Below are positions 3,905-63,217 of a stretch of DNA of 64,000 nucleotides, one piece after another. Every line of letters starts with the position of its first letter. Positions within the stretch are counted from its first letter, which is position 1. A program made the position numbers and the translations under genes. Under the pieces are notes generated by a model. It searched no databases and was not told where the DNA came from. It was given only the letters and a program-made list of their open reading frames with translations. This DNA is from Macrostomum lignano (Eukaryota), in NCBI GenBank assembly GCA_002269645.1, contig NIVC01001160.1, positions 127,372 to 191,371 on the forward strand, written 5' to 3'.

Positions 3905-3937
<33 letters not shown>

Positions 3938-3950
3938 GACTAACTAACTG

Positions 3951-4009
<59 letters not shown>

Positions 4010-4040
4010 GACTAACTAACTAACTAACTAACTAACTAAC

Positions 4041-4083
<43 letters not shown>

Positions 4084-4157
4084 AACTAACTAACAACTAA
4101 CTAACTAACTAACAACTAACTAACAACTAACTAAAAACTAACTAACAACTAACTAAC

Positions 4158-4189
<32 letters not shown>

Positions 4190-4219
4190 TACTAACTGAC
4201 TAACTAATTAACTAACTAA
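3902..4219. repeat. (CTAA)n / (TTAG)n microsatellite
   Basis: About 320 bp of near-perfect tetramer repeat. Confidence 0.97.
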
Positions 4220-4414
4220 GCAAGTAACTGAATAACCAAACATTTAATAATTTAAAGACTCGATATATCTAAGCAATATAAACTGGAGGCGCCGTTCGCT
4301 CTTCAAAGAAATGCACCATTACCCACGCAGACAATTTTGATCCGAGTTTATCGAACAGCGTACTGAGAGAAAAAAAACAATAAAAAGTGTCACGTGACTC
4401 TCGCAGCAGCGGAG

Positions 4415-5080
4415 TCAATCGGTGCAGAGGCCGAATCGACCAACAACGGGGTCGAAACCGATGCAGTAGAGACCCTCGCAGCAGTCTGCGCGGCGCCTGC
4501 ACACGTTGCCAAGGCCGTTGCACTGCCGGCTGCAGCCCGCCGCCTCCCTCGGAGCTGCGCGAAGGGGAGCGGCGATTGTGTGAGCTCTTAAAGATAATGG
4601 TAGTCAGAATTTACGTCTGGGAAAGATCACATCTGTCTGCTGGGGATCACATCTGTCTGCTGGGGATCACATCTGTCTGCTGGGGATCACATCTGTCTGC
4701 TGGGGATCACATCTGTCTGCTGGGGATCACATCTGTATGATATAGGTCAAATTTGTCTGGGTGGAGGTCAAATTTGTCTGGTGATGGTCACATCTGTCTT
4801 GTGAGAGTCACATCTGTCTGGGTGGAGGTCACATCTGTCTGGGTGGAGGTCACATCTGTCTGGTGGAGGTCACATCTTTTCGGTATAGGTTACATCTGTT
4901 TGGTGAGGATCACATCTGTCTTTAGGATGTCACATCTCTCAGATCACATCTGTTTGGATAAGGTCACATCTGTCGGAGGTGAAACAGGTGCCATTTGGTC
5001 AGAAACTACAAATTCACTTTTTACTCACCCATGAGCAAAGAGGCAAAAAGTACCAACAAGAGAAAGCCAATCTGCCACAT
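4415..5080 (-). CDS. Secreted inhibitor-cystine-knot (conotoxin/knottin-like) prepropeptide, 73 aa; exons 5080-5029 and 4584-4415
   Basis: Manual translation: MWQIGFLLLVLFASLLMA HTIAAPLRAAPREAAGCSR QCNGLGNVCRRRADCCEGLYCIGFDPVVGRFGLCTD*. Exon 1 ends ATG G|GTGAGT (phase 1) and joins ...TTTAAGAG|CT. Cys spacing C-x6-C-x5-CC-x4-C-x12-C. Confidence 0.85.
4618..4975. repeat. About 20-bp tandem repeat (GGGATCACATCTGTCTGCTG, degenerating to GGAGGTCACATCTGTCTGGGT) in the knottin-1 intron
   Basis: Direct periodicity. Confidence 0.9.
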
Positions 5081-5307
5081 CGCGCTTTGTCGGTCAGCTC
5101 AGCGTCAGCTTTTCAAATATCGCTCAACGTTTTAAATAATGCTCCTACTTGTCCTTAACAAATTCCCATGCGACTTTGATTCAGTTTGCTGCTGTGGCCA
5201 TAGACAGTGTTGACTTGTTTAGATTTCTATAGTTGCTCCTCAGGCCTGGCAACTTGCGTGTCTTCAGGCTTAGGTAATTTTTGCAGCTTTTGAGTATCTT
5301 CTTTTAA

Positions 5308-6271
5308 ATGTCAACCAACACACCAGGTCGCTATCTGAGACTTGTAATCTTTCTTGCTCTGCACACAGGTCAGTCAGTTATACTTTGTTTAATAATACCA
5401 CTTTCATGAACTTTGTATTATTACGGGGGTGGGGGGCGCAGCCCAGAGGTCCAGTGCGGTGCTCTGATGTGCCAGCGGCCCAGGCTCGATTCCAAGTGTA
5501 GTCGCCTTAATTTGGGCCTGAATTGGAATCTCTGCTCGGCTCTGCTCGTGCAATTAACGCCCTTTGAGGGCCGACCCTCAAGGAAGTGGGAAGTGTACAT
5601 GCCGAAACGATAAATTAAGTCAGGGCCGCTGTGCACTCCTGTGTGAGTGTGTGCCTGTGCGTGTGACTGCGTACGTGCACACAGCCCCTGCCTCTATCAA
5701 TACATACATGCACGCCTGTTCCAACTGTGTAAAATACAAAAACAACTGTACGCAGGCTGCAGCCACCCTGGCGCAACGCCTTCGGAGGCATCGACCCACA
5801 GCCAGCGCTGGGGCAATTCTGCTCATTCAGCTGACTCCTGAGCACACTCAAGAGCGCCAATAACTGTACTCAGGCACGCACTCGTGCACACGCTCACACA
5901 GGGTGCACATCAAATCGTTAGAAAGTCAAAATCCTGGTAGGAATCGAACCAGGAGTCGTGGCGCGAGACTCAGAGTTGCTCTTCCCAGCCCGTGTTCAAC
6001 TCAGTATGCCCAGCAATCCACTACCTTCCCAGCAGCTCCCGGAATCCTGGGCAGCCGACCCTGTGGAAAGGGCGGCGACCCCTGCACCACCGGCCCGGAC
6101 TGCTGCTCGGGCGCCTGCGACGCCAACCCCGCGTTTCCTTTCGGCTACTGCATTCACGGCTCGACCGCGGCAGCCAAATCCGGCAGAAGTTCCGGTTTGC
6201 AAGTCAGCCAGCGTGTCACCATGCTAACACTGGCCTGCCTGTTGCTGGTGCGAGTGGGCCGAAATTTGTAA
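5308..6271 (+). CDS. Inhibitor-cystine-knot (conotoxin-like) peptide with C-terminal hydrophobic tail (possible GPI signal); exons 5308-5368 and 6033(or 6036)-6271
   Basis: Exon 1 MSTNTPGRYLRLVIFLALHT+G|GTCAGT (phase 1). NAGNAG acceptor ...CCTTCCCAG|CAG|. Exon 2 APGILGSRPCGKGGDPCTTGPDCCSGACDANPAFPFGYCIHGSTAAAKSGRSSGLQVSQRVTMLTLACLLLVRVGRNL*. Spacing C-x6-C-x5-CC-x3-C-x10-C. The exon 1 assignment is inferred. Confidence 0.78.
5450..5677 (+). repeat. Dispersed repeat of about 230 bp, copy A (second copy at 23051-23286)
   Basis: Shares GATTCCAAGTGYAGTCRCCTTAATTTGGG, AAGTGTACATG and the identical CACTCCTGTGTGAGTGTGTGCCTGTGCGTGTGACTGCGTACGT with copy B. Confidence 0.8.
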
Positions 6272-6574
6272 TTTGCAGTTCATACAAATATTATTCGTAA
6301 TATCATTAGCTGTCTGTCAGCATTCCTTCCGCTGGGAAGACAGCAAAAATGAAATACATTATTTTTAAATAAACTACGAGTACATAGTCATAGGCTTTGA
6401 CCTCGTAAAGGCACCATTGTTGATTTCTTGAAGAACATGACGATTAGGGCAAAAAAGCATCCCCAATGTGCTTTGGCTCAAAAAGCAACAGAGCAACCCC
6501 ATGAGCCACAGATTTGCATCAATTCCTGTATGAACTTTTGACATCTTAGCAATCCTCCCCGAGCCAGTTATGTT

Positions 6575-7792
6575 TGACGTGACCCTTCTTTTATTTGAAA
6601 TGACGCTTCTTTTGTTTGACATCGGGCTTCTTTTGTTTGACATGACGTGTGTTTTAAGTTTTACATGACGTGTCTATTTTTACATGACGTGTCTATTTAT
6701 TACATGACGCTTCTTATATATGTTTTACATGACGTGTCCTTTATGTTTGACATGACGCGTCTTTTATGTTTTACATGACGTATCTTTTATGTTTGACATG
6801 ACGCGTGTTTTATGTTTAACATGTCGTGTCTTTTATGTTTAACATGTCGTGTCTTTTATTTTTGACATGACGCGTCTTTTATGTTTAACATGTCGTGTCT
6901 TTTATTTTTGACATGACGTATCTTTTATGTTTGACATGACGCGTCTTTTATGTTTTACATGACGTGTCTTTTATGTTTGACATGACGCGTCTTTTATGTT
7001 TGACATGACGCGTCCTTTATGTTTTACATGACTCGTCTTTTATGTTTGACATGACGCGTCTTTTATGTTTGACATGACGTGTCTTTATGTTTGACATGAC
7101 GTATCTTTTATGTTTGACATGACGCCTCCTTTATGTTTTACATGACTCGTCTTTTATGTTTGACATGACGCGTCTTTTATGTTTGACATGACGCGTCTTT
7201 TATGTTTAACATGTCGTGTCTTTTATTTTTGACATGACGTATCTTTTATGTTTGACATGACGCGTCTTTTATGTTTTACATGACGCGTCTTTTTTTGTTT
7301 AACATGTCGTGTCTTTTATTTTTGACATGACGTATCTTTTATGTTTGACATGACGCGTCTTTTATGTTTTACATGACGCGTCTTTAATGTTTGACATGAC
7401 GCGTCCTTTATGTTTTACATGACTCGTCTTTTATGTTTGACATGACGTGTCTTTATATTTGACATGACGCGTCTTTTATGTTTGACATGACGCGTCTTTT
7501 ATGTTTAACATTTCGTGTCTTTTATTTTTGACATGACGTATCTTTTATGTTTGACATGACGCGTGTTTTATGTTTTACATGACGCGTCTTTTATGTTTAA
7601 CATGTCATGTCTTTTATTTTTGACATGACGTATCTTTTATGTTTGACATGATGCGTCTTTTATGTTTTACATAACGTGTCTTTTATGTTTGACATGACGC
7701 GTCTTTTATGTTTGACATGACGCGTCTTTTATGTTTGACATGACGCGTCTTTAATGTTTGACATGACGCGTCTTTTATGTTTGACATGACGC
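6575..7792. repeat. About 23-bp AT-rich minisatellite (TTTTATGTTTGACATGACGCGTC)
   Basis: About 1.2 kb of direct periodicity. Confidence 0.95.
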
Positions 7793-8244
7793 CAAACTCC
7801 AAATATAAAATATATGCACCAATGAAATGAAAATTCAGAACTTCAATGTGAGTTCACGCATCAAATCAAGGCGTTGATTGAAACTCCTGATTTATGATAA
7901 ATGAGGGAGATTTCTGGCAGCAAGATCTCTTCAATTGCTACAAAAGTCGCCACAACTGACAAGCAAGTTGAATGAAGGGTCGCCCAATGAGCACAGGCAG
8001 TGCAAGGATCACTGAGCCTGGAATCTGGACTGTCTACCTGTACATAGGATTGTTTAGCGGATTGGGAAGAAATCAAATTTAAACAGTGTAATTTGAATCG
8101 GGATATTTTGGTTGGCAAACCAAATTTAAATCCATTATACGAAATAAAAATTTTGAACTAAAGTCGTTCTCTCCATATAGTGATACCCGACTGTATGCTC
8201 AGATGTGATGCAAGTAGCTATTTAGAAACAAAATGCACTAGTTA

Positions 8245-8405
8245 GTTACTGCAACTACAACTGCAACTGCAACTGTAACTGTAACTGTAACTGCAACTGC
8301 AACTGTAACTGCTACTGTTAATGCAACTCTAACTGCAACTGCAACTGCAACTGTAACTGCTACTGTTAATGCAACTCTAACTGCAACTGCAACTGCAACT
8401 GCACT
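8245..8405. repeat. (ACTGYA)n hexamer satellite, left block
   Basis: Same unit as 10444-13039. Confidence 0.9.
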
Positions 8406-10443
8406 TGACTTACTTGACTTAGCTGCACGGGGCTCCGTGCGTCCGGAAACAGCGAGGAGGCGTTGCTGCCCATTTCGCTAGCCCCTGGCGACCACGGGCA
8501 GCTAGTGCTGCGGTGTCGCGCAGGGAGTTCCGGTGGCGCCGATGTCCGCAGCGTGGTCCCCCTCCGGAGGGTCCAGGAGGTGGACTGCCGCTCGCCCAGT
8601 AGCCCTTAGGTAGCGGACGAGCTGGCAGAGATTCTCGGGCCTGAAAACGTCGGAGAGGTCCGGGTTTGGGCCGAGGTGGGTGAGCCTGTCCTGAGTAAAG
8701 GCGGGGCATTCACAGATAAAGTGCTCCGCATTCTCGACACCGGAGAGGCAGAATGGGCATTCCTCACTGCGGATTTTTCCCTGGAGGTAGCGATGCCTGG
8801 CAAAACAGCCATGACCCGAGAGGGCCATGGTCACCGCCCTGATGTCCCTGCGGTTGAGTCCAAGCAGGGCCCTGTGGAGGGCGGGGGAGAACAGGGGACA
8901 GCCGCGCGGGATTCCCGGCAGTCTGGGGCGTAAGGCCACATTTCCTTGTGCTTTGAGCCACCCACTGGTTGATCCGAGTGGTGACAACGGCGGTGGGGGT
9001 GGGGGCCACGGGCAGAGGACCAGTAAAAGAACCGGTTGGGCCATCCTTGGCCAGGCGATCGGCCAACTCATTGCCGGGGTGGTCCGAGTGCCCTGGGATC
9101 CACCTTAGGGACACCTTGTTGGAGGCGCCTAAGCGGTTGAGCTGCCCGATGCAGTCAAGGACTGTACGCGAGCAGGTGGTGGTGCGCTCAAGGGCGTGAA
9201 TAGCAGATTCACTGTCCGAGTGGAGGGTAATTTCCTTCCCCAGACGCGCTGATTGTACAGCTCCATGGCACAGGAGCAGATGGCGAGAACTTCGTTCTGG
9301 AAGACGGTGGAGCAGGTGCCGGTGTGCTGGGAGAAGGTCGCCACAGTTCTCCCTCCAGACACGATGCAGTAGCCGTAGCCAGGGGCGGAGTTGATTTGGG
9401 TCTTGTCAGTGAAGCAGTGGATTTCACGGGATTTCCAGTTGTCCCTTGCTTCATGACGTGGTGGAATGCTGTTTTGAATTTGAGCGGAGAGCAGAGCGTG
9501 GACGGGATTCCGTCCGAGAGGGTCAGCAGGCCTCCCGCTGCTTCCAGGTCTCGCATGCTGAGGTCGCCGTGCGGCCATAGGTTCCGCTTTCTAAAGGCGA
9601 ACTGCTTCTGGATTTGGACACCCGCGTCAAGTAGACGGCGGGTGGTCTTCATTGCCTCCTTTCTGACAAAGAGGTCGAGGGGGGAATGTCCATGAAGGAG
9701 TTCATCCCAGCGAAGGGCGTAGAGGGAGCCGCGCTCATGATAGCTCGACAAGCGCGGCCTTGCACCCTATTTAGAGCCTCAAGAACCCCTTTCACCTCTA
9801 GAGCACTGTTCCAAATGAAGCCGGCGAAGATGGCCGGTCTAACAATGGCAGTGTAAATCCACCAGAGGCGGCGGGGGGTGAGGCCCCAGGTGGCGCCGAA
9901 AGCTCTGCGGATCTGCGCGAGAGTCGCGAGGGCTTTGCGGGCTTTGGATTGGACGTGCGGAGTCCAACTCAACCTGTGGTCGAGGGTGACACCCAGACAT
10001 CTGGTTTGTTTCTCCATGGCAACGGGTTTGCCATAGAGGGAGAGCGGTTCGATCCTCCAGTTTCGGCGACTGGTGAACATAATAGCCACGGTTTTAGACT
10101 CAGAGAACCTGAGACCGCAGCTATGTGCCCAGCGCTCGGCACGGTGGATGAAGGCTTGAAGGAGGTCCCTGAGGACCGCGGGTGATGGTCCAGCCACAGT
10201 GGCGGTAACATCGTCCGCATAGCCGACCATCTGAACCGGGTCCGGATGCGGGCTGCAGAGCAGCTCGTCCATGGCTAAATTCCAGAGGATCGGGCTGAGG
10301 ACTCCACCTTGCGGTTCGCCTTTCTGGACCTCCACAGAGCGGGAGTGTCCCAGGAGGTGCGAGGTGGCAGTACGATGGGAGACCATGTACATGATCCAGT
10401 GGATAAGGTGCTCGTGCGTGCCCCGGGATTCCAGGGATTCCAC
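8406..10443 (-). mobile_element. 5'-truncated, frameshifted non-LTR retrotransposon with RT + RNase H + C-terminal CCHC (LOA/R1/I-group-like)
   Basis: RT motifs PQGGVLSPILWN, VGYADD, RCLGVTLD. RNase H motifs [31 protein letters not shown]. Zn finger CPFC...ENAEHFICEC. These are split over several frames. Confidence 0.88.
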
Positions 10444-13039
10444 TTTAACTGGAACTGTAACTTCAAGTGAAACTGCAACTGCAACTGCAACTGTAACTGT
10501 AACTGCAACTTCAAGTGCAACTTCAACTGCAACTGCAACTGTAACTGCAACTGTAAATGCAACTGTAACTGCAACTGTAACTGTAACTGCAACTGCAACT
10601 TCAATTGCAACTTCAACTGCAACTTCAAGTGCAAGTGCAACTGCAACTGCAACTGCAACTGTAACTGTAACTGTAACTGTAACTGCAACTTCAAGTGCAA
10701 CTGCAACTGCAACTGTAACTGTAACTGTAACTGCAACTTCAAGTGCAAGTGCAACTGCAACTGCAACTGCAACTGTAACTGTAACTGTAACTGTAACTGC
10801 AACTTCAAGTGCAAGTGCAACTGCAACTGCAACTGCAACTGTAACTGTAACTGCAACTTCAAGTGCAAGTGCAACTGTAACTGCAACTGTAACTGTAACT
10901 GTAACTGCAACTTCAAGTGCAAGTGCAACTGCAACTGCAACTGCAACTGTAACTGCAACTGCAACTGTAACTGTAACTGTAACTTCAAGTGCAACTGCAA
11001 CTGCAACTGCAACTGTAACTGTAACTGCAACTTCAAGTGCAACTGCAACTGCAACTGCAACTGTAACTGTAACTGCAACTGCAACTGTAACTGCAACTTC
11101 AATTGCAACTTCAACTGCAACTGCAACTGTAACTGTAACTGCAACTGCAACTGCAACTGTAACTGTAACTGTAACTTCAAGTGCAACTGCAACTGCAACT
11201 GCAACTGTAACTGTAACTGCAACTGCAACTGCAACTGCAATTGCAACTGTAACTGTAACTGTAACTTCAACTGCAACTGTAACTGCAACTTCAATTGCAA
11301 CTTCAACTGCAACTGCAACTGTAACTGTAACTGCAACTGCAACTGCAACTGTAACTGTAACTGTAACTTCAAGTGCAACTGCAACTGCAACTGCAACTGT
11401 AACTGTAACTGCAACTGCAACTGCAACTGCAATTGCAACTGTAACTGTAACTGTAACTTCAAGTGCAACTGCTACTGCAACTGCAACTGTAACTGTAACT
11501 GCAACTTCAAGTGCAAGTGCAACTGCAACTGCAACTGCAACTGTAACTGTAACTGCAACTTCAAGTGCAAGTGCAACTGCAACTGCAACTGCAACTGTAA
11601 CTGTAACTGTAACTTCAAGTGCAACTGCAACTGCAACTGCAACTGTAACTGTAACTGCAACTTCAAGTGCAACTGCAACTGCAACTGCAACTGTAACTGT
11701 AACTGCAACTTCAAGTGCAAGTGCAACTGCAACTGCAACTGCAACTGTAACTGCAACTGTAACTGTAACTGCAACTGCAACTGCAACTGTAACTGTAACT
11801 GTAACTTCAAGTGCAACTGCAACTGCAACTGCAACTGTAACTGTAACTGCAACTTCAAGTGCAAGTGCAACTGCAACTGCAACTGCAACTGTAACTGTAA
11901 CTGTAACTTCAAGTGCAACTGCAACTGCAACTGCAACTGTAACTGTAACTGCAACTTCAAGTGCAACTGCAACTGCAACTGCAACTGTAACTGTAACTGC
12001 AACTTCAAGTGCAAGTGCAAGTGCAACTGCAACTGCAACTGTAACTGTAACTGCAACTTCAAGTGCAAGTGCAACTGCAACTGCAACTGCAACTGTAACT
12101 GCAACTGTAACTGTAACTGCAACTTCAACTGCAACTGCAACTGTAACTGTAACTTCAAGTGCAACTGCAACTGCAACTGCAACTGTAACTGTAACTGCAA
12201 CTTCAAGTGCAACTGCAACTGCAACTGTAACTGTAACTGCAACTTCAAGTGCAACTGCAACTGCAACTGTAACTGTAACTGTAACTGCAACTGCAACTGT
12301 AACTGCAACTGTAACTGCAACTGTAACTGTAACTGCAACTTCAATTGCAACTTCAACTGCAACTGCAACTGCAACTGTAACTGCAACTGTAAATGCAACT
12401 GCAACTGCAACTGTAACTGTAACTGCAACTGTAACTGTAACTGCAACTGCAACTGTAACTGCAACTGTAACTGTAACTGCAACTTCAATTGCAACTTCAA
12501 CTGCAACTGCAACTGTAACTGTAACTGCAACTGTAACTGTAACTGCAACTGCAACTGTAACTGCAACTGTAACTGTAACTGCAACTTCAATTGCAACTTC
12601 AACTGCAACTGTAACTGTAACTGTAACTGTAACTGCAACTGCAACTGCAACTGTAACTGCAACTGTAACTGCAACTGCAACTGCAACTGCAACTGCAATT
12701 GCAATTGCAACTTCAATTGCAACTTCAACTGCAACTTCAACTGTAACTGTAACTGCAATTGCAATTGCAACTTCAACTGCAACTTCAACTGCAACTGTAA
12801 CTGTAACTGTAACTGTAACTGCAACTGCAACTGCAACTGTAACTGCAACTGTAACTGCAACTGCAACTGCAACTGCAACTGCAATTGCAATTGCAACTTC
12901 AATTGCAACTTCAACTGCAACTGTAACTGCAACTGCAACTGCAACTGCAACTGCAATTGCAATTGCAACTTCAATTGCAACTTCAACTGCAACTGCAACT
13001 GCAACTGTAACTTTAACTGCAACTTCAAGTGCAACTGCA
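10444..13039. repeat. 2.6-kb (ACTGCA/ACTGTA/ACTTCAAGTGCA)n hexamer satellite
   Basis: Direct periodicity; produces the spurious TATATV, VAVAV and LQLQ ORFs. Confidence 0.97.
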
Positions 13040-13073
13040 ATCGCTTCATTCTGCGATCGCATAGAGGCCTGAT

Positions 13074-13282
13074 CAGGGACAACTAAAACACTCGGGACGC
13101 GAAACAAGCCAAATCATGGTGAAAAAAGTTGGGGGCTCGTTTGAAAGCAGTGTCCTATGGCCATCCAACTAGCATGAACTTTCAATGCATGAAAAACTGG
13201 GCGCCCATAGACTTAAACGAGTCCTTAACTTTTTTCACCATGATTTGGCTTGTTCCCGTCCCGAGTTTTTTAGTTGTCCCTG
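13074..13282. mobile_element. hAT-type MITE, 209 bp
   Basis: About 60-bp TIRs beginning CAGGGACAACTAAAA; perfect 8-bp TSD GGCCTGAT at 13066-13073 and 13283-13290. Confidence 0.9.
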
Positions 13283-26253: not shown

Positions 26254-26946
26254 ATGTCAACTGAGTCTGCGGTGGCCCTCAAGCTGCCCACGTTCTGGGC
26301 CAGCCAGCCTCGCGCCTGGTTCATCCAGGCAGAGGCGCAATTCGTCTTCCGCAACATCACGCAAGACGCTACCAAGTACTTTCACCTCGTAGCCGCGCTG
26401 GACCAGCAGTCAGCCGATCGCCTGCTGGACGTGCTTGAGACACCGCCGGCTGAGAACAAGTACGATTCTCTCAAGGCCCGCCTCCTCGGCACATTCGGCC
26501 TGACGCAGCAACAGCGTGCCAGCCGGCTGCTCAACCTGGCCGGCCTCGGTGACCGCCGCCCGTCCAAGCTCATGGACGAGATGCTGGCCCTGCTCGGCAA
26601 CCACCGGCCCTGCATGCTCTTCGAGGAGCTTTTTCGCCAGCAGATGCCGGCAGACATTCGCATGGCACTCGTCTCCGCGGATTTCGCTGACCCGCGCGCA
26701 GTTGCGCGACTCGCGGATGAACTCTGGGCGAGCCCGGCACAGCCCGTGGCCACCGCCACCCTGCCGCCAGAGCACCCGCCGGTAGTTGCTGCCACCGCCC
26801 GCCCAGCTCGCGCCAAGCCGCAGCAGCACCAGCCGAGGGAGGCCGACGGCCCCATCTGTTTCTTCCACCGGAAGTTCGGCGCCAAGGCCCGGCGTTGCGA
26901 GCCGCCCTGCCAGTTCTCGGGAAACGGACCGGCCGGCCGTCAGTGA
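26254..26946 (+). CDS. gag: Gag of the CsRn1-like element
   Basis: [23 protein letters not shown]-terminus; CHCC finger [18 protein letters not shown]. Confidence 0.93.
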
Positions 26947-29900
26947 ACGTTTCGACGGCCGGCAGCAACAACCTCCTGCTCATCCCCGACGTAGCCACGG
27001 GCCGGCGCTTCTTGGTCGACACCGGCGCTGAGGTGAGCATTTTTCCTGTCTCGGGGGCAGACGCCCGCTCGCATACACCCGGCCCGCCGCTTTTCGCGGC
27101 CAACGGCAGCCCGATCCGCACGTTCGGCAGCCGGACACTGACGCTCGACCTCGGCGTCAAGGCCTGCACCTGGCCGTTCATCCTGGCCGAGGTGTCACGG
27201 CCGTTGATCGGCGCGGACTTCCTGCGGCACCACGGCCTACTGGTGGACATGCCGAACCGCCGTCTGCTCGACACTAGCTCGCTGTCCAGCGCCCACCTGC
27301 TGCTCGGGTCCGGCCCGGCACCTCAGCTCGCCGCCGCCGTCGCTGGGGACCCGTACAGCCAGCTGCTCGCGGAGTTCCCGTCGCTGACGGAGCCGAGTTT
27401 CCAGAAAGCCCGGCCGCTCCACGGGGTCCAACATCATATTCCTACGACGGGCCCCCCTGTCCACGCCCGGGCGCGCCGCCTGCCGCCTGACAAGCTGGCG
27501 GTGGCCAAGGAGGAATTCCGCAACCTGGAGCAGCTGGGCATCGTGCGGCGGTCCTGCAGCCCCTGGTCGTCGCCGCTGCACATGGTGCCAAAGGCCTCCG
27601 GGGGTTGGCGGCCCTGCGGCGATTTCCGGCGGCTCAACGACGCCACGGTGCCCGACCGCTACCCGGTGCCGCACATTCAGGACTTTTCTGCGCGGCGGTC
27701 CGGGTGCAACATTTTCTCCAAGATCGACCTGGTGCGGGGCTACCACCAGATCCCGGTTGCCGAGGCCGACATCGCCAAGACGGCCGTCATCACGCCATTC
27801 GGCCTGTTCGAGTTTCTCCGGATGCCATTCGGACTCAAAAACGCCGCCCAGGCCTTCCAACGGCTGATTGACACGGTCTGTCAGGGCTTGGACTTCGTGT
27901 TCGCCTATATCGACGACTTCCTAGTGGCGAGCAGCGGCCCTCAGCAGCATCTGGAGCACCTGCGCACGCTGTTCCAGCGCCTGGCAGACAACGGCCTCCT
28001 CATCAATCCAGCCAAGTGCCAGTTTGGCCGCAGCGAAATCGACTTTCTAGGCCACCTCATCAACAGCCGGGGCGCCATGCCGCTGCCAGACAAAGTCGAA
28101 GCCATCGCCCGATTCGCTCCGCCCGCGACCTTCAAGGGCCTGCAAGAGTTCGCCGGCATGGTGAACTTCTATCACCGGTTCGTGCCGCGGGCCGCCCAGT
28201 TGCTGCGCCCCATCTACGGCGCCCTGGCCAGCAAGGACAAGATCGTTCAGTGGACACCGGAGCTGACGGACGCCTTCAACAGCACGAAGCAGGCCCTGGT
28301 TGACGCGACCATGCTTGCGCACCCGGAGCCCGACGCCCCAACGGCGCTGACGGTCGACGCCTCGGACACCGCCATCGGGGCGGTTCTGGAGCAGCGTGTC
28401 GGCGAGACCTGGCGGCCACTCGCTTTCTTCAGCCGCCAACTGCGGCCGGCTGAACAAAAGTACAGCGCTTTCGACCGGGAGTTACTCGCTCTCTATCTGG
28501 CCACGCGGCATTTCCGCTACTTTTTGGAAGGCCGCATCTTCACCGCCTACACCGACCACAAACCCCTGGTCGCGGCCATGGCCAAGTTGTCGGATCCCTG
28601 GTCAGCGCGCCAGCAGCGGCACCTCGCATACGTGTCGGAGTTCACCACCGACATCCGGCACGTGGCAGGCAAGGACAATCCGGTGGCCGACGCCCTGTCC
28701 CGCTGCACCGTCACCTCTGTGCAGCCGCTGCTCCCCGGCATCGACTACGCGGCCCTGGCACGCGCGCAGCTAGTGGACGATCCCGCGCTCGCCGGCACCG
28801 GCCTGCGGCTCGAGCGCGTGATGTTGCGTCCCGGCCTGGAGGTCATCTGCGACACCGTGACCGGCCGCCCGCGCCCGCTGGTGCCCACCGACTTCCGCCG
28901 CGCCGTTTTCGACGCAGTCCACGGCCTGGCGCACCCGTCCGTACGCAGTACGCGGCGCCTGGTGTCCGAGAAGTTCGTGTGGCCGGGAATCAACAGGGAC
29001 GTCGGCCAATGGGCTCGCAGCTGCATCGCCTGCCAGACGGCCAAGGTGCAGCGCCACGTGACCGCCCCGCCCGCCAGCATCCCGGTGCCCAGCAGCCGTT
29101 TCGCGCACGTCCACATCGACCTTGTCGGACCGCTGCCGCAGTCCCGCGGCTTCACGCACCTGCTGACCGTAGTCGACAGGTTCTCCCGCTGGCCGGAAGC
29201 TTTCCCCTTGGCCGACACTTCCGCTGCCTCCTGCGCGTCCGCTTTCATCGCCGGTTGGATCGCCCGCTTCGGCGTGCCCAGTGACGTCACGTCCGACCGC
29301 GGCTCCCAGTTCACCTCCGGGCTATGGGCCAACGTGTCGCGGCTGCTGGGCGTGCAGCTGCACCACACCACCGCTTTTCACCCACAGGCTAACGGCCTGG
29401 TGGAACGCTTCCACCGCCAGCTCAAGGCATCCCTGATGGCGCGCCTGACCGGACCGACTTGGACCGACGAGCTGCCCTGGGCGTTGCTCGGCATCCGCAC
29501 GGCTCCCAAGGAGGACATCGGCGCCTCCTCGGCCGAGCTGGTCTACGGCGCCCCGCTGACGGTACCGGGAGAATGCCTGCAGGCCGCGCCACCCGAGGGC
29601 TCTTACGACCAGTTCCTGGCCCGGTTACGCAGCGCGGTGCAGTCGTTCCGGCCGCCTCCAACCTCGCGACATGGCCGCGTCGCTGCCTACGTGCCTGCTG
29701 CCCTGGAGTCCTGCACGCACGTCTTCATCCGCCGCGACGGCCACCGGCCATCTCTGCAGCGGCCGTACTTCGGGCCCTTCCAGGTCCTTGAGCGCGGCGA
29801 CAAGACCTTCCGCCTCGACCTGGGCACGCGGCAGGATCACGTGGCAGTGGACAGACTCAAGCCTGCGGCGCTCGATCCCGGCGAGGCGATTCCGGCTCCG

Positions 29901-30107
29901 GCTCTGCGGCCACGAGGCCGCCCCCGCCTGGACGGCCGGCCACAACTGCCACGTGGTGGAGACCCTCCGGTCGCAGCTGCGCACCCGCAAGCGCCACCGG
30001 GGCTCCCACCAACGCGCCTCCCACCGGTGCAAGCGACCCGGCCTCCAGCGTCTGGTCGCCGCCAGCTTCCGCCTCGCCGGTGCCGCCCGACGCGGTTTCG
30101 GTCCTAG
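26919..30107 (+). CDS. pol: Pol (PR-RT-RNase H-integrase) expressed by -1 frameshift
   Basis: Slippery heptamer G GGA AAC at 26919-26925. Motifs FLVDTGA, YIDD, DAS..., H-LAHP...[18 protein letters not shown]. Frame is uninterrupted. Confidence 0.95.
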
Positions 30108-34858: not shown

Positions 34859-35862
34859 ATGAATCAGAATCAGGCTAATGACGCCATCGCCATGCTGGCA
34901 GAAGAATTGCGAAACCGACTAGAGATAGGGCCGATGAGACACGTTAAGATTCAGAAATTCACACCTACGCAAGACATTCGGATCTGGCTAACAGCCTTCG
35001 ATCAGCGCTGTGAAGTAGAAGGATAGATGAGGAACATAGGAAGCAGGAATTGCTAGCTAATCTGGACCTGTCCACTGCATTCGCAGCGGTACAGCGCCTA
35101 AATCTGCCCGAGGATCTTGAATACGAAGAGTTCAAAGAGCGACTGATTGAGCGATTCGGAAGAATCGGTAGTTCCGCAGAATTCAGAGAGGAGTTTCGTG
35201 GAAGAATGCAAGGCAGAAATGAGCCTGTAGAGACTTTCGCAGACTGTTTGATCGAGCTGGCATCGCGTGCATTTCCGAATATGACGGTTGAGCAAAGGGA
35301 AGAAGAAATTGTTGAGCAATTCATCAAGGGAATCAGAATTCCGTCAGAGACCCGTGAGAAGCTAATCTTTGCGCAGCCAGGCAATTTACAAGAGGCTAGA
35401 AGAATGCTAAGAAGGATGGAGGCTGCGTGGAACATGTCTCACAAGAATGTCAACATGAGAATGGCCAAAGGCGAAGGCGAGAGTGAGCAGAAGGCAGATC
35501 AGGAGAAGCTTGAGGACATCATCAAGAAGCAGAGAGCAGAGTTAGAGCAACAGAAGAAGGCGATTGAGGAGCTGATGGAAGAGAAGAGAGCTAGCCGTCA
35601 GCAGTATCATCCGCAGAATCAATATCAAACGTACGCTCAGGTCGCTGGACCGCCGCAGCAGCCGAGATATCGGCCGCAGCAGCAGCAGCAGCAGCAGCCA
35701 GTATGGCGCGGTCAGCCTCAGTTCAACAGGCAGCCACAGCAACAGCAGCAGCCTCGAGCCTGCTACAATTGCGGGAAGCTTGGCCACATGGCGAGGAATT
35801 GCCAGAGCGCTAGGCCAAACGGTCAGCGAGTGATGAACTACCAGAAGCAGCAGGGAAACTGA
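34859..35862 (+). pseudogene. gag: Gag (one -1 frameshift near 35025) with CYNCGKLGHMARNC zinc knuckle and Q-rich tract
   Basis: MNQNQANDAIAMLAEEL...RCEVEG, shift to IDEEHRKQELLANL...; ends CAG GGA AAC TGA. Confidence 0.8.
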
Positions 35863-53649: not shown

Positions 53650-56600
53650 CAATGCGTAAAGATGAGTCAATAGGGCCAGGTGCCAACGGTGTCGCCGTCA
53701 ACTTGACGGAGCGGCAAACAAAGATGGCGACCTACAGAGGACGGCGGCCGAGTGTGCATGGCTCCGAAACGCCGAGCACACGCTTTAATGCCCAGCGCAA
53801 TGCACTGCGCACCATGCTGCCCGCCGGCTCCACCAGGACTCGCGGCCTGCCCAGCCGGAGCCTGCTAGAGGATTGGACACATTATCCTTGCCAGTCCCCC
53901 GCACTGCACCAGCTAGCAGAACAATCGAGACAACCAAAGAAAGTCAAAACCAGTTTGATAACTGCACAAGACTTGCTACCTTCAACGCACGAACGCTCAC
54001 TGCCCCCTGGAGACTGCACGAGCTAACCAAGCTGGCAAAGAGCATGAACATCTCCATTCTGGCTGTCCAACAACACCGCAGGAGCACCGAAGAGTGCGCT
54101 GATCCAGGCCTTGGCTGCAGCAGTTCCGAGCCGCCCCAGCCTCAGCCCAGGGTTCTGGAGGCTTCGGGTTTCTGCTGTCACCTGGTGCCTCAAGGGCCCT
54201 TCTGAATGTGAGCTTCCCAACCGACCGCCTTGGCATTGCCTCTTTTGGCACGAAGGACTTCATGTAATCTGCGTCTACGCCCCCACAGCCCCACGCACAG
54301 CTACTGATCTTACCGAGACTGAGTCAATGTATGACCACCTGGGATCACTCATCGACTCGGTTCCTGATCGCGACCAGCTTTTTGTGGCTGGAGACTTCAA
54401 CGCGCCACTGTCCCCTGATTGCCGCCTGGTAAAGAACAACTGCGGCTCCACCAACACTAACTCGGACTTCCTGTCAACTTTCATTCACTCTCAAGACCTG
54501 ATTGCAGCCAATGGTGTCATGCGGCAGCGGTACAACAAGCTGCCCACCTTCTTCGGCCCAAATGGACGGACCACGCCATCAGATCTCGACTGCGCAAAGT
54601 GGTCAATATCCGCCCCAGCTGCGTGAGGTCCGACCATTCTCTGCTGGCCTGCGACATCAACTGCCGATGGAAAAAGTACAAGGCTGGCCCACCGCACCTC
54701 CTCTGGGCAGATCTGAGAAACCCAGACACGCGCAGTGCGTTCACTGAAAAGCTGTAAAATGCTCTCCGGCCCTGAATGAATCGGCGGACACCTTCACCAG
54801 AGCTATTGAGGAAGCTGTCTCGATCCTACCAAAACGAAAACCGCACCAACCAAAAGCCCTCTGGGACTCCGACGAGGAGATCTTCATCGCTAGGCGCGAC
54901 GTGCAAAGAACAACCGCAGTCTTTGGCCAAGACAGTGAGCAGGCTGAAACAGCCCGGGCCCAACTACGCGACACGCATGCCCGGAGGACCGAAGCCTTTG
55001 TCCAGGAGACTGTTGCTGAAATTCAACTAGCAACAGACAACTGCCGGCACACAGCGGCCTGGCGCGCCATCAACCGCCTGACTGGCAGGAAGCAGAGGGC
55101 CAATGCCGCTGTAGGTGCTGAGTCCATACACCATCGCAAAGCCCTGCTGGCCACTCACTACCACAATGTGCTCAACGCTCCACCACCCTCTGCTGATTTG
55201 CTGCCGATCGAAAACTTTACCCCGGCTGAGCCCTCGACTTTCAACTCCGGCCCGCTGACTGCCTACGAGGTGAACCGAGTGCTCAAGACCATGAGCCCCG
55301 CCGCTGCCGCCGGAGTAAATGGCATTCCACCCAGGATGCTCAAGCTGCCGGAGCTGACACAGGACATCACGACTTTGCTCAACAAGCACTGTCCGCTTGG
55401 AGGCAACCCAGATGCTACTGCTGCTGACAACTGGCGCACCTCTAAGATCGTCTCCATCCCCAAGAAGGGCGCATCCACCAGTCTGGACAACCAACGCGGC
55501 ATCGCTCTGGAATGCACTCTGGCTAAGCTGCTCAATGCTATACTGCGTAATCGGCTGCTGCCTGGCCACAACCAAATGATCCTGAGCCTCCAAAGTGGCT
55601 TCAGGCCCGGCCGCTCGACAACAGAGCAGATTGCAGCCCTTCGAGCAGTCGTCGAGGCCGGTAAAACTCACCAACGAGCTGTGTCAATTGTTTTTGCGGA
55701 CTTCCGCAAAGCTTTTGACTCAGTGTGCCGGCGCGCGATCGCGTGGCTGCTCGAGCACTATGGCGTCCCCCCGGCTCTTATCTCTACAGTGATGGACCTC
55801 TACAACAACAGCAAAGCCTTTGTCCAAACCAGCGATGGCCCAACTGAGGACTTCTGCACCAGCTCCGGAGTCCTCCAAGTCCAAGGTGACACGTTGGCCC
55901 CACTGCTCTTTATCCTTGTCGTCGACTACGTGCTGCGCCGAAGCCTCACAGAGGAGGACAGTTACCTGCTGGCGTCACGTCGGAGCTCCCGCCGCGGTGC
56001 TGCCCCGTTGCCGCCCTCGCGTACGCCGACGACATCGCCCTGCTGTGCCGCAGTCCGACTGCCGCCCAGAGAGCGCTCTCAAGACTCTATGAGGAGAGCG
56101 CCCGAGTCGGATTGCAAATCAACGCACGCAAGACGGAGGTGCTGCACGTGGGCACCGATGCAGCACCAATCCTAACCCTTCCAGATGGGCAAGTCATTTC
56201 AGTCTGCAGAGACTTCCGGTACCTGGGCTCCCTCGTGAGGAGCCCTGACTCCATCATCGCTGACCGGAGGTCACAGGCCTGGCGCGCGGCTCATCTCCTC
56301 AGGGAGGTCTTCAGCTCAGCTGCCAACGACGACCTGAAGAAGCCACCCTCCAGCGGCGCCGGCTAATGCTCGTCGGCCACTGCCTCCGCAGCTACGGCAG
56401 AGGGGCGCTCACCTTGCTGCATCAGCCAACCGAGCGTCTCCGACGGGGCCAAGGCCGGGCCGCCACGCTAGAGTCTGACCTACAAGCCATTAACCTGACC
56501 CCACAATCTGTCACAAACTTCTTCCTTCTCGTCTCTCCTGCGAGCGCGTGTGCGCAAGACGCCTACCATAATCTTTGCGTCCTTATATATATATATAGTA
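53650..56600 (+). mobile_element. Decayed RTE-like LINE (APE endonuclease + RT) ending in (TA)n
   Basis: ATFNARTL, VICVYAPT, VAGDFNA, SDHSLL (APE). QRGIAL, QSGFRPGRST, FADFRKAFDSV, QGDTLAPLLF, AYADDI, FRYLGS (RT). Multiple frameshifts. Confidence 0.88.
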
Positions 56601-62726: not shown

Positions 62727-63217
62727 ATTATCATAGATAATTATGGTTCAGCTGCACAACTCTCAGGCAGCTCATGAGCAGCAAAATGAGAAGGCTGCTA
62801 CAATGGCAAACCGTGCAGATCTCACCGGAAGCCAGCAGTTTTCGCTACAAGAAATGCAGCATAGGCGTCCAGTGAAATCTGCACAGAAACCCTGACAGCG
62901 CTCCCAAGAGTGGGAGAATTCATTACTCGAACTTCCGGTGATTTCAGCCAATGTGCCCTGTCTCAATAATCCATTTTTCTGCTAGTCCATTCTCTCTCTC
63001 TTTCAGAGCGCTGTTAGTACTCGTATATCTTGCCTGTCTCAGTTGGTTTACATAGCCTTGTTTTCACACCAAGTCACGAGGCGCAAGTGGCACAGGTTGG
63101 CTGCAACACTTTATAGTTATTGACCCAGCTAGCATTGTTGCCATGCAATTTAAGAGTGTGAGACAGTTGTTGAACTGTTAATATTTATGAAATACGGAGC
63201 TCTTTATGGGCCAATCT

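Follow-up and report, generated by a model that had tools for sequence, protein, structure and literature searches.

The DNA analysed here (the window) is a stretch of 64,000 nucleotides (nt) from the free-living marine flatworm Macrostomum lignano, in which a small cysteine-rich gene on the minus strand, called K1 here, was followed up together with its neighbouring paralogue K2. The K1 locus (L002) lies on contig NIVC01001160.1 of assembly GCA_002269645.1 (Mlig_3_7), with which window positions 4240-10000 match at 100% identity, and the K1 coordinates (4415-5080) are the exact span of the coding sequence (CDS) of a deposited GenBank M. lignano gene. Its product (P0001) is entered in GenBank as a hypothetical protein of 63 amino acids (aa) (PAA45939.1, with the identical entries PAA71507.1 and PAA92185.1) and in UniProt as A0A267FEB7, and the locus tags include BOX15_Mlig018955g1 and Mlig019895g3. 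K1 is a genuine two-exon gene, catalogued already but unstudied, and is a new uncharacterised member of the well-known knottin class. An earlier reading of the same letters (the original prediction) had given it a toxin-style precursor with signal, pro-region and mature peptide. The molecular account that we hold with good confidence is a real gene with a 63-aa precursor and a secreted knottin without the long pro-region of that prediction; no single biological role is covered by this account. The features of K1 are as follows, with a slash marking a splice or cleavage site.

5029..5080, minus strand: K1 exon 1, 52 nt from the ATG at 5080, encoding MWQIGFLLLVLFASLLM plus the first base of Ala18, phase 1
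4555..5028, minus strand: K1 intron, 474 nt, phase 1, donor G/GTGAGT and acceptor cgcgCAG/CT in the RNA-derived model
4627..4937: minisatellite of 20-nt units, 15.4 copies, in the K1 intron, with a copy number that varies among three genomic copies
4585..4588, minus strand: AAGAG (context tttaAGAG), whose second AG (4586-4585) is the acceptor of the original prediction
4555..4584, minus strand: 30 nt read as (A)HTIAAPLRAA in the original prediction, intronic in the annotated model
4555..4557, minus strand: CAG acceptor of the deposited K1 model, with C at -3 and 14 of 18 pyrimidines upstream
4415..4554, minus strand: coding part of K1 exon 2, 140 nt including the TGA at 4417-4415, encoding (A)PREAAGCSRQCNGLGNVCRRRADCCEGLYCIGFDPVVGRFGLCTD
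4532..4534, minus strand: TGC codon of the seventh cysteine (Cys25 of the precursor), aligned with a Gly codon (GGC) in K2
4424..4522, minus strand: K1 knottin core, Cys29..Cys61, C-x6-C-x5-CC-x4-C-x12-C, with RRR in loop 2 (4498-4490)

The annotation of Mlig_3_7 was made from RNA-seq only, by genome-guided assembly with StringTie and TACO, boundary trimming with TBONE and prediction of open reading frames (ORFs) with TransDecoder (PMC5730564). Because it derives from RNA-seq (PMC5730564), K1 is transcribed, with its intron in phase 1, rather than lacking a transcript, and because RNA-seq was the sole source, the annotated junctions reflect transcript evidence. Exon 1 starts at the annotated CDS start of P0001, reads ATG...CTC ATG G, encodes the hydrophobic core of a signal peptide (IGFLLLVLFASLLM) and is followed by a consensus donor.

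Two acceptors in frame with each other lie at the end of the intron, namely the GAG chosen in the original prediction and, 30 nt downstream of it, the CAG of the deposited model. P0001 begins MWQIGFLLLVLFASLLMAPREAAG and skips the 30 nt, hence the CAG at 4557-4555; across the exon junction it reads SLLMAPREAAGCSR, without HTIAAPLRAA, and therefore the CAG acceptor is the one used. This acceptor aligns base for base with that of K2 (GCAG/CTCC in both). The GAG acceptor has G at -3, which is the rarest acceptor class, and the other AG, 2 nt upstream of it (4588-4587), would shift the frame; use of the GAG would lengthen the precursor to 73 residues, by placing HTIAAPLRAA behind the signal. A branch-point-like CTCAC lies within 4555..4584, downstream of AAGAG; its A (4581) precedes the CAG acceptor by 26 nt. 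The main K1 product is the 63-aa precursor, and HTIAAPLRAA (4584..4555), which was placed in the precursor by the original prediction, is intronic in the annotated model; the RNA-derived protein skips it, and its inclusion depends on a weak acceptor.

Near-identical copies of K1 were found on two further contigs (NIVC01000061.1 and NIVC01005179.1), making three genomic copies in total, which fits the duplicated sequence reported for the assembly (180-312 Mb, in a recently duplicated M. lignano genome; PMC5730564). The 63-aa model is annotated at all three loci and the ORF is intact in each, with one synonymous base difference in the CDS. The comparison of the three copies was also tried as a discriminator between the acceptors and was uninformative, the copies being identical through the disputed 30 nt. 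The gene spans are 666, 686 and 1315 nt; the minisatellite occupies most of the intron, and its array length is unstable.

With the CAG acceptor the pro-region is reduced from the 19 residues of the original prediction to at most nine (PREAAGCSR, between the hydrophobic core and Gln28). The signal peptide was borne out by a rule-based test, with its hydrophobic core on exon 1 and with -3/-1 sites present; the venom-style pre-pro-mature architecture was not supported, half of the pro-region being intronic in the RNA-derived model and the PREAAGCSR spacer having no recognised processing site. In a direct reading, the residues preceding Gln28 are G-C-S-R, without a dibasic pair (KR/RR), RxxR or a Glu-containing quadruplet, which makes a separate propeptide doubtful and would probably leave the seventh cysteine on the mature peptide. 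The residue after Ala18 in the 63-aa protein is Pro19. Proline at +1 is generally incompatible with signal-peptidase cleavage, and because of it the predicted site after LLMA shifts to AAG/CSR, the next one obeying the -3/-1 rule (Ala22-Ala23-Gly24/Cys25), whose K2 counterpart is Ile-Leu-Gly/Ser-Arg-Pro-Cys. Convertases cut Arg-Pro bonds poorly, and because K2 has Arg-Pro (SR-P-C) at the equivalent bond, 'SR' is unlikely to be a conserved convertase site. Cleavage after Arg27 with pyroglutamate formation is conceivable but improbable. The 'propeptide' of the original prediction is mostly an artefact of the wrong choice between two in-frame acceptors. The seventh cysteine that it had noticed is real (TGC at 4534-4532, just upstream of the knot), and what gave way was its placement in the pro-region, the mature peptide being the likelier place. 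K1 is thus better termed a signal plus a seven-Cys knottin than a toxin-like prepropeptide.

The six-Cys knottin framework on the C-terminal 36 residues was confirmed (C-x6-C-x5-CC-x4-C-x12-C), as was the RRR basic patch in loop 2, and the adjacent Cys III-IV pair and the loop lengths fall within the range of the knottin class. With a loose knottin regular expression, three matches were obtained in the window (K1, K2 and one probable chance match), and 0.055 +/- 0.23 were expected from 200 composition-preserving block shuffles of the window. The third match (62835-62897) has no signal exon or knottin-typical CC spacing and was taken as chance, and a broader scan of the window by cysteine density for more knottin genes returned only repeat-derived ORFs. 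In Pfam, the Toxin_12 profile (PF07740, 'ion channel inhibitory toxin') scored the precursor at 15.8 bits and the 36-aa core at 18.6 bits (E 0.003), below its gathering score of 21, with a match that covers only profile positions 2-21 of 30 and that is flagged as 'weak' in its precomputed form. Dickkopf_N (PF04706) gave 16.1-17.6 bits (cut-off 25) over profile positions 24-46 of 51, and the conotoxin profile PF02950 gave 10.1 bits (gathering score 25.1); all of these sub-threshold matches belong to knottin-type families. By phmmer against the sequences of the PDB, inhibitor cystine knot (ICK) toxins and Dkk4 were returned with E-values from 0.008 to 6, together with one spurious match to a designed repeat protein.

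The single-sequence AlphaFold2 (AF2) model of K1 has a mean predicted local distance difference test score (pLDDT) of 80, with 86-88 over model residues 11-45 and strands at residues 29-31 and 41-44. Confidence is low in one part of the model only (residues 1-10, pLDDT 56), and this part holds the seventh cysteine. When the model was compared with the PDB by Foldseek, 30 of the 39 matches were ICK/knottin or Dkk/colipase-type mini-proteins with template modelling (TM) scores of 0.5-0.65, including psalmotoxin 1, funnel-web and tarantula toxins, a sea-anemone knottin, conotoxin GXIA, draxin and Dickkopf domains. A knottin fold is likely for K1, and Cys25 would probably lie outside the knot, without a partner in the monomer; it may be trimmed off N-terminally or enter a mixed disulfide or a disulfide-linked dimer. 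The 'toxin' label for K1 is a resemblance of fold only, and M. lignano is not known as a venomous animal.

In the proposed sequence of events, signal peptidase would cut K1 after Ala-Ala-Gly24, the cut after Ala18 being blocked by Pro19, and no separate propeptide would be removed. The secreted product would be of about 39 residues (CSRQC...CTD); the form Cys25-Asp63 is predicted to have 39 residues, seven Cys, an isoelectric point (pI) of ~7.7 and a net charge of ~+0.7. Its knot would be closed by three disulfides with the canonical 1-4, 2-5 and 3-6 pairing (Cys29-43, 36-48 and 42-61, respectively), and the extra cysteine, at or near the flexible N-terminus, would be free for a dimer or a mixed disulfide. 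The peptide may then act extracellularly as a rigid, protease-resistant binding module, with the Arg37-39 cluster and the hydrophobic loop 4 (IGF..VVGRFGL) as its putative binding face.

No orthologue of K1 was found by a word-indexed search, by a knottin-profile search or by exhaustive phmmer over 1.84 billion representatives. The former two returned only the gene's own product, and the exhaustive phmmer returned beyond it P0002 (E 2.5e-6) and P0003 (E 3e-4), which are tandem-knottin proteins; a fourth match, P0004, was rejected as a low-complexity repeat. P0002 (273 aa, ENA) and P0003 (242 aa, Logan) are precursors with four to five tandem knottin domains. They are tied to K1 by the motif 'QCNGxGxxC....CCxG', and no other remote relatives of K1 were detected, but they differ from it in the four to five repeated domains per precursor and in a much shorter last loop, and the similarity is limited to the cysteine scaffold.

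Among known systems, the spider ICK toxins of the Toxin_12 type (huwentoxin/hanatoxin) have the best Pfam and PDB sequence similarity to K1 and provide its top structural neighbours (psalmotoxin 1, Hc3a, Pmu1a and hanatoxin). Their framework likewise starts as C-x6-C-x5-CC-x4-C, and basic residues adjoin a hydrophobic loop in them as in K1. K1 is unlike them in its 12-residue last loop, its seventh cysteine, its sub-threshold Toxin_12 score and the lack of a propeptide with a Glu-containing cleavage quadruplet; we know of no venom apparatus in M. lignano, a diatom-feeding flatworm. The O-superfamily conotoxins of cone snails (framework VI/VII; PF02950, PF08087) have the C-C-CC-C-C order and a separate signal exon like K1, and conotoxin GXIA was the single conotoxin structural match (root-mean-square deviation 0.7 A over 34 columns). 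In conotoxin precursors the pro-region is long and conserved and closes with basic residues, unlike K1 with its spacer of at most nine residues and a single Arg.

Two families of related animals were compared in the same way. CRP-I of Mytilus is a lineage-restricted lophotrochozoan knottin-like family with the C-C-CC-C-C order and a fold taken from deep-learning models, and its four-exon genes encode a conserved propeptide and an obligatory KR/RR site (PMC10138031). Its last exon holds the entire mature peptide (PMC10138031), as does that of K1, but the K1 gene is built of two exons and lacks a dibasic site, and sequence similarity to CRP-I was not detected. UPF0506 is a knottin-fold family of parasitic flatworms (Schistosoma; Schistocephalus A0A183TDP7) with a double array of 12 Cys, the first half of which is C-x6-C-x7-CC-x4-C-x9-C (PMC8400842). 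It is flatworm-restricted, secreted and cysteine-rich like K1, but K1 has a single array and is not from a parasite, and no match of UPF0506 to K1 was among the Pfam results at E <= 10. The N-terminal domain of Dickkopf differs from K1 in its cysteines, ten against six or seven.

The paralogue and the region between the two genes have the following coordinates.

5308..6271, plus strand: K2, head-to-head with K1; exon 1 at 5308..5368, exon 2 at 6033 or 6036..6271
5081..5307: K1-K2 intergenic region, 227 bp between the divergent genes, with TATTTAAA ~55 nt upstream of the K1 ATG

For K2 (BOX15_Mlig024669g1-g3; P0005/P0007) the annotation gives two NAGNAG splice forms, of 99 and 98 aa. Like K1 it has a signal exon, a phase-1 intron and a GCAG/CTCC acceptor, and it has the Ala-Pro junction, SRxC, DCCxG and FGxC in common with K1 at 34% identity. 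It differs from K1 in having Gly at the position of the seventh cysteine, shorter loops 3 and 4, the two NAGNAG forms and a C-terminal extension of 38 residues. The model of the K2 core (pLDDT ~81) matches plant, spider, scorpion and insect knottins, and the core is followed by a linker and then by a predicted hydrophobic C-terminal helix (SSG / LQVSQRV / TMLTLACLLLV), so that the modelled tail looks like a glycosylphosphatidylinositol (GPI)-attachment signal or a short membrane anchor. K2 scored 19.5 bits against PF08087 (gathering score 24.3), and the 'WAP domain' label given to it in UniRef was not reproduced by Pfam. P0006 (metaclust, 82 aa), which matches 5308..6230, is a K2 variant in spliced form whose knottin part is 98% identical; after ...GYCIH its tail changes frame and ends in ...CKSASVSPC, with two Cys gained and the hydrophobic tail lost. 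Its origin may be a divergent allele or paralogue, a different Macrostomum or an error of sequencing. An inverted duplication may have given rise to K1 and K2, with the 227-bp region as a control region common to both, and a promoter function is a candidate one for this region; the scan of it for promoters and terminators of bacterial type was disregarded, the host being a eukaryote.

Several points weigh against the account preferred here. The K1 junction rests on the deposited model, and the GAG acceptor may serve a minor 73-aa isoform. The signal-peptidase site, the disulfide pairing and secretion are all predictions. No Pfam gathering score was reached by K1, and the Foldseek E-values were non-significant (best 0.24), as is usual for targets of 35-40 residues. 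Selection on the peptide or on its seventh cysteine has no evolutionary support, the copies being near-identical and no orthologue having been found. Neither a site of expression nor functional data for K1 or K2 were found in the M. lignano paper texts and supplements that were searched, and the identifiers Mlig018955, Mlig019895, Mlig024669, A0A267FEB7 and PAA45939 were absent from them. The net charge of ~0 to +1 does not favour a classical cationic antimicrobial peptide.

Other accounts of the K1 product were weighed against the 63-aa precursor with a seven-Cys knottin. In the original prediction an 18-aa signal and a 19-aa propeptide with the seventh cysteine were followed by cleavage at Arg, giving a 36-residue six-Cys toxin with N-terminal pyroglutamate (pGlu). 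This model draws on a GAG/CT acceptor that is in frame and without a stop, on SLLMA/HT as an acceptable signal-peptidase site in the 73-aa isoform, on a Gln right after the Arg, which could cyclise by established chemistry, on the even Cys count of the product and on the 'SR' before the first knot Cys in both K1 and K2. It is at odds with the RNA-derived protein, which lacks HTIAAPLRAA at three loci, with the G at -3 and the frame-breaking AG 2 nt upstream, with the lack of KR/RR, RxxR or a Glu quadruplet before Arg27, with the Arg-Pro at the equivalent K2 bond and with the lack of a known venom apparatus in a diatom feeder, and we regard it as improbable. It is still much harder to credit that K1 is non-functional, either transcribed yet untranslated or a decaying ORF that mimics a knottin. 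The failure to find orthologues, copies too similar to show purifying selection and the odd Cys count are what such a remnant would give, but the ORF is intact in 3/3 copies, the signal exon and splice sites are canonical, the gene plan is shared with K2, the AF2 model is confident over the core and the Cys pattern is expected by chance only 0.055 times per window.

As to its role, K1 is likely, on its modelled fold, a secreted, disulfide-knotted binding peptide. Defence would come first in the ranking of roles, followed by antimicrobial and reproductive roles and then by endogenous signalling. A defensive or anti-competitor secretion acting on membrane proteins of another organism is put forward tentatively, as a possibility that falls short of being probable; an antimicrobial role seems rather unlikely, and a strict venom function is unlikely for this diatom feeder. 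A place for K1 among fast-evolving reproductive secretions, as a seminal-fluid protein of the prostate gland passed at mating, is about as doubtful as the antimicrobial role or slightly more so: K1 is small, secreted, cysteine-rich and lineage-restricted like the M. lignano seminal-fluid candidates (PMC5977470), but its identifiers were not found in the supplements on seminal-fluid and reproduction genes, a weak negative, as these files were partial and mostly used older transcript names. Another reading takes K1 as a soluble ligand and K2 as its membrane-tethered version, which modulate the worm's own channels or receptors in the manner of Dickkopf, agouti-type or Lynx-type proteins. Dickkopf_N and the Dkk/draxin structures among the weak K1 matches, the predicted hydrophobic C-terminal helix of K2 after a small-residue SSG site and the 227-bp divergent promoter region common to both genes are consistent with it. 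The Dkk-type matches are no better than the toxin matches, Dkk domains carry 10 Cys and K1 does not, no orthologues were found in other animals although signalling ligands are usually conserved, and the metaclust variant of K2 has no hydrophobic tail, so this reading is judged unlikely. More speculative again is the combined picture of head-to-head knottins under one control region, with a soluble K1 (perhaps as a disulfide dimer) and a GPI-like tethered K2 as endogenous or surface-displayed modulators of channels or receptors, to which we give little credence. If true, tethered K2 and soluble K1 would correspond, among knottins, to the Lynx-type 'tethered toxins' and possibly show the pre-venom state of such peptides.

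Knottins are much-reused mini-protein scaffolds, found in animal venoms and defence peptides and used in drug design, and to our knowledge almost nothing is known of them in free-living flatworms. M. lignano is a laboratory model amenable to transgenesis and RNA interference (RNAi), and the K1/K2 pair could reveal the role of knottins in a non-venomous animal. The literature search gave no open-access paper in which Macrostomum and knottins are linked, and a planarian toxin preprint (10.1101/2025.01.09.632098) contains no mention of ICK peptides, knottins or Macrostomum.

An Rfam scan of the whole window gave no match. An (AACT)n microsatellite of ~80 copies (3906..4219) lies ~200 nt downstream of the K1 stop and is much longer in locus L001. 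A long ORF at 26895..30107 (plus strand), in a block of 66-68% GC, has reverse transcriptase, RNase H and integrase domains, as is typical of a Ty3/gypsy-type long terminal repeat (LTR) retrotransposon, and the further intervals 54901..56175 and 35050..35862 (both plus strand) comprise another reverse-transcriptase fragment and an ORF with a zinc knuckle (gag-like). Short-repeat ORFs of up to 1152 codons, translating as (CN)n and (SC/SY)n, lie at 9649..13107 (both strands) and at 8226..8318; almost certainly they represent satellite DNA rather than genes.

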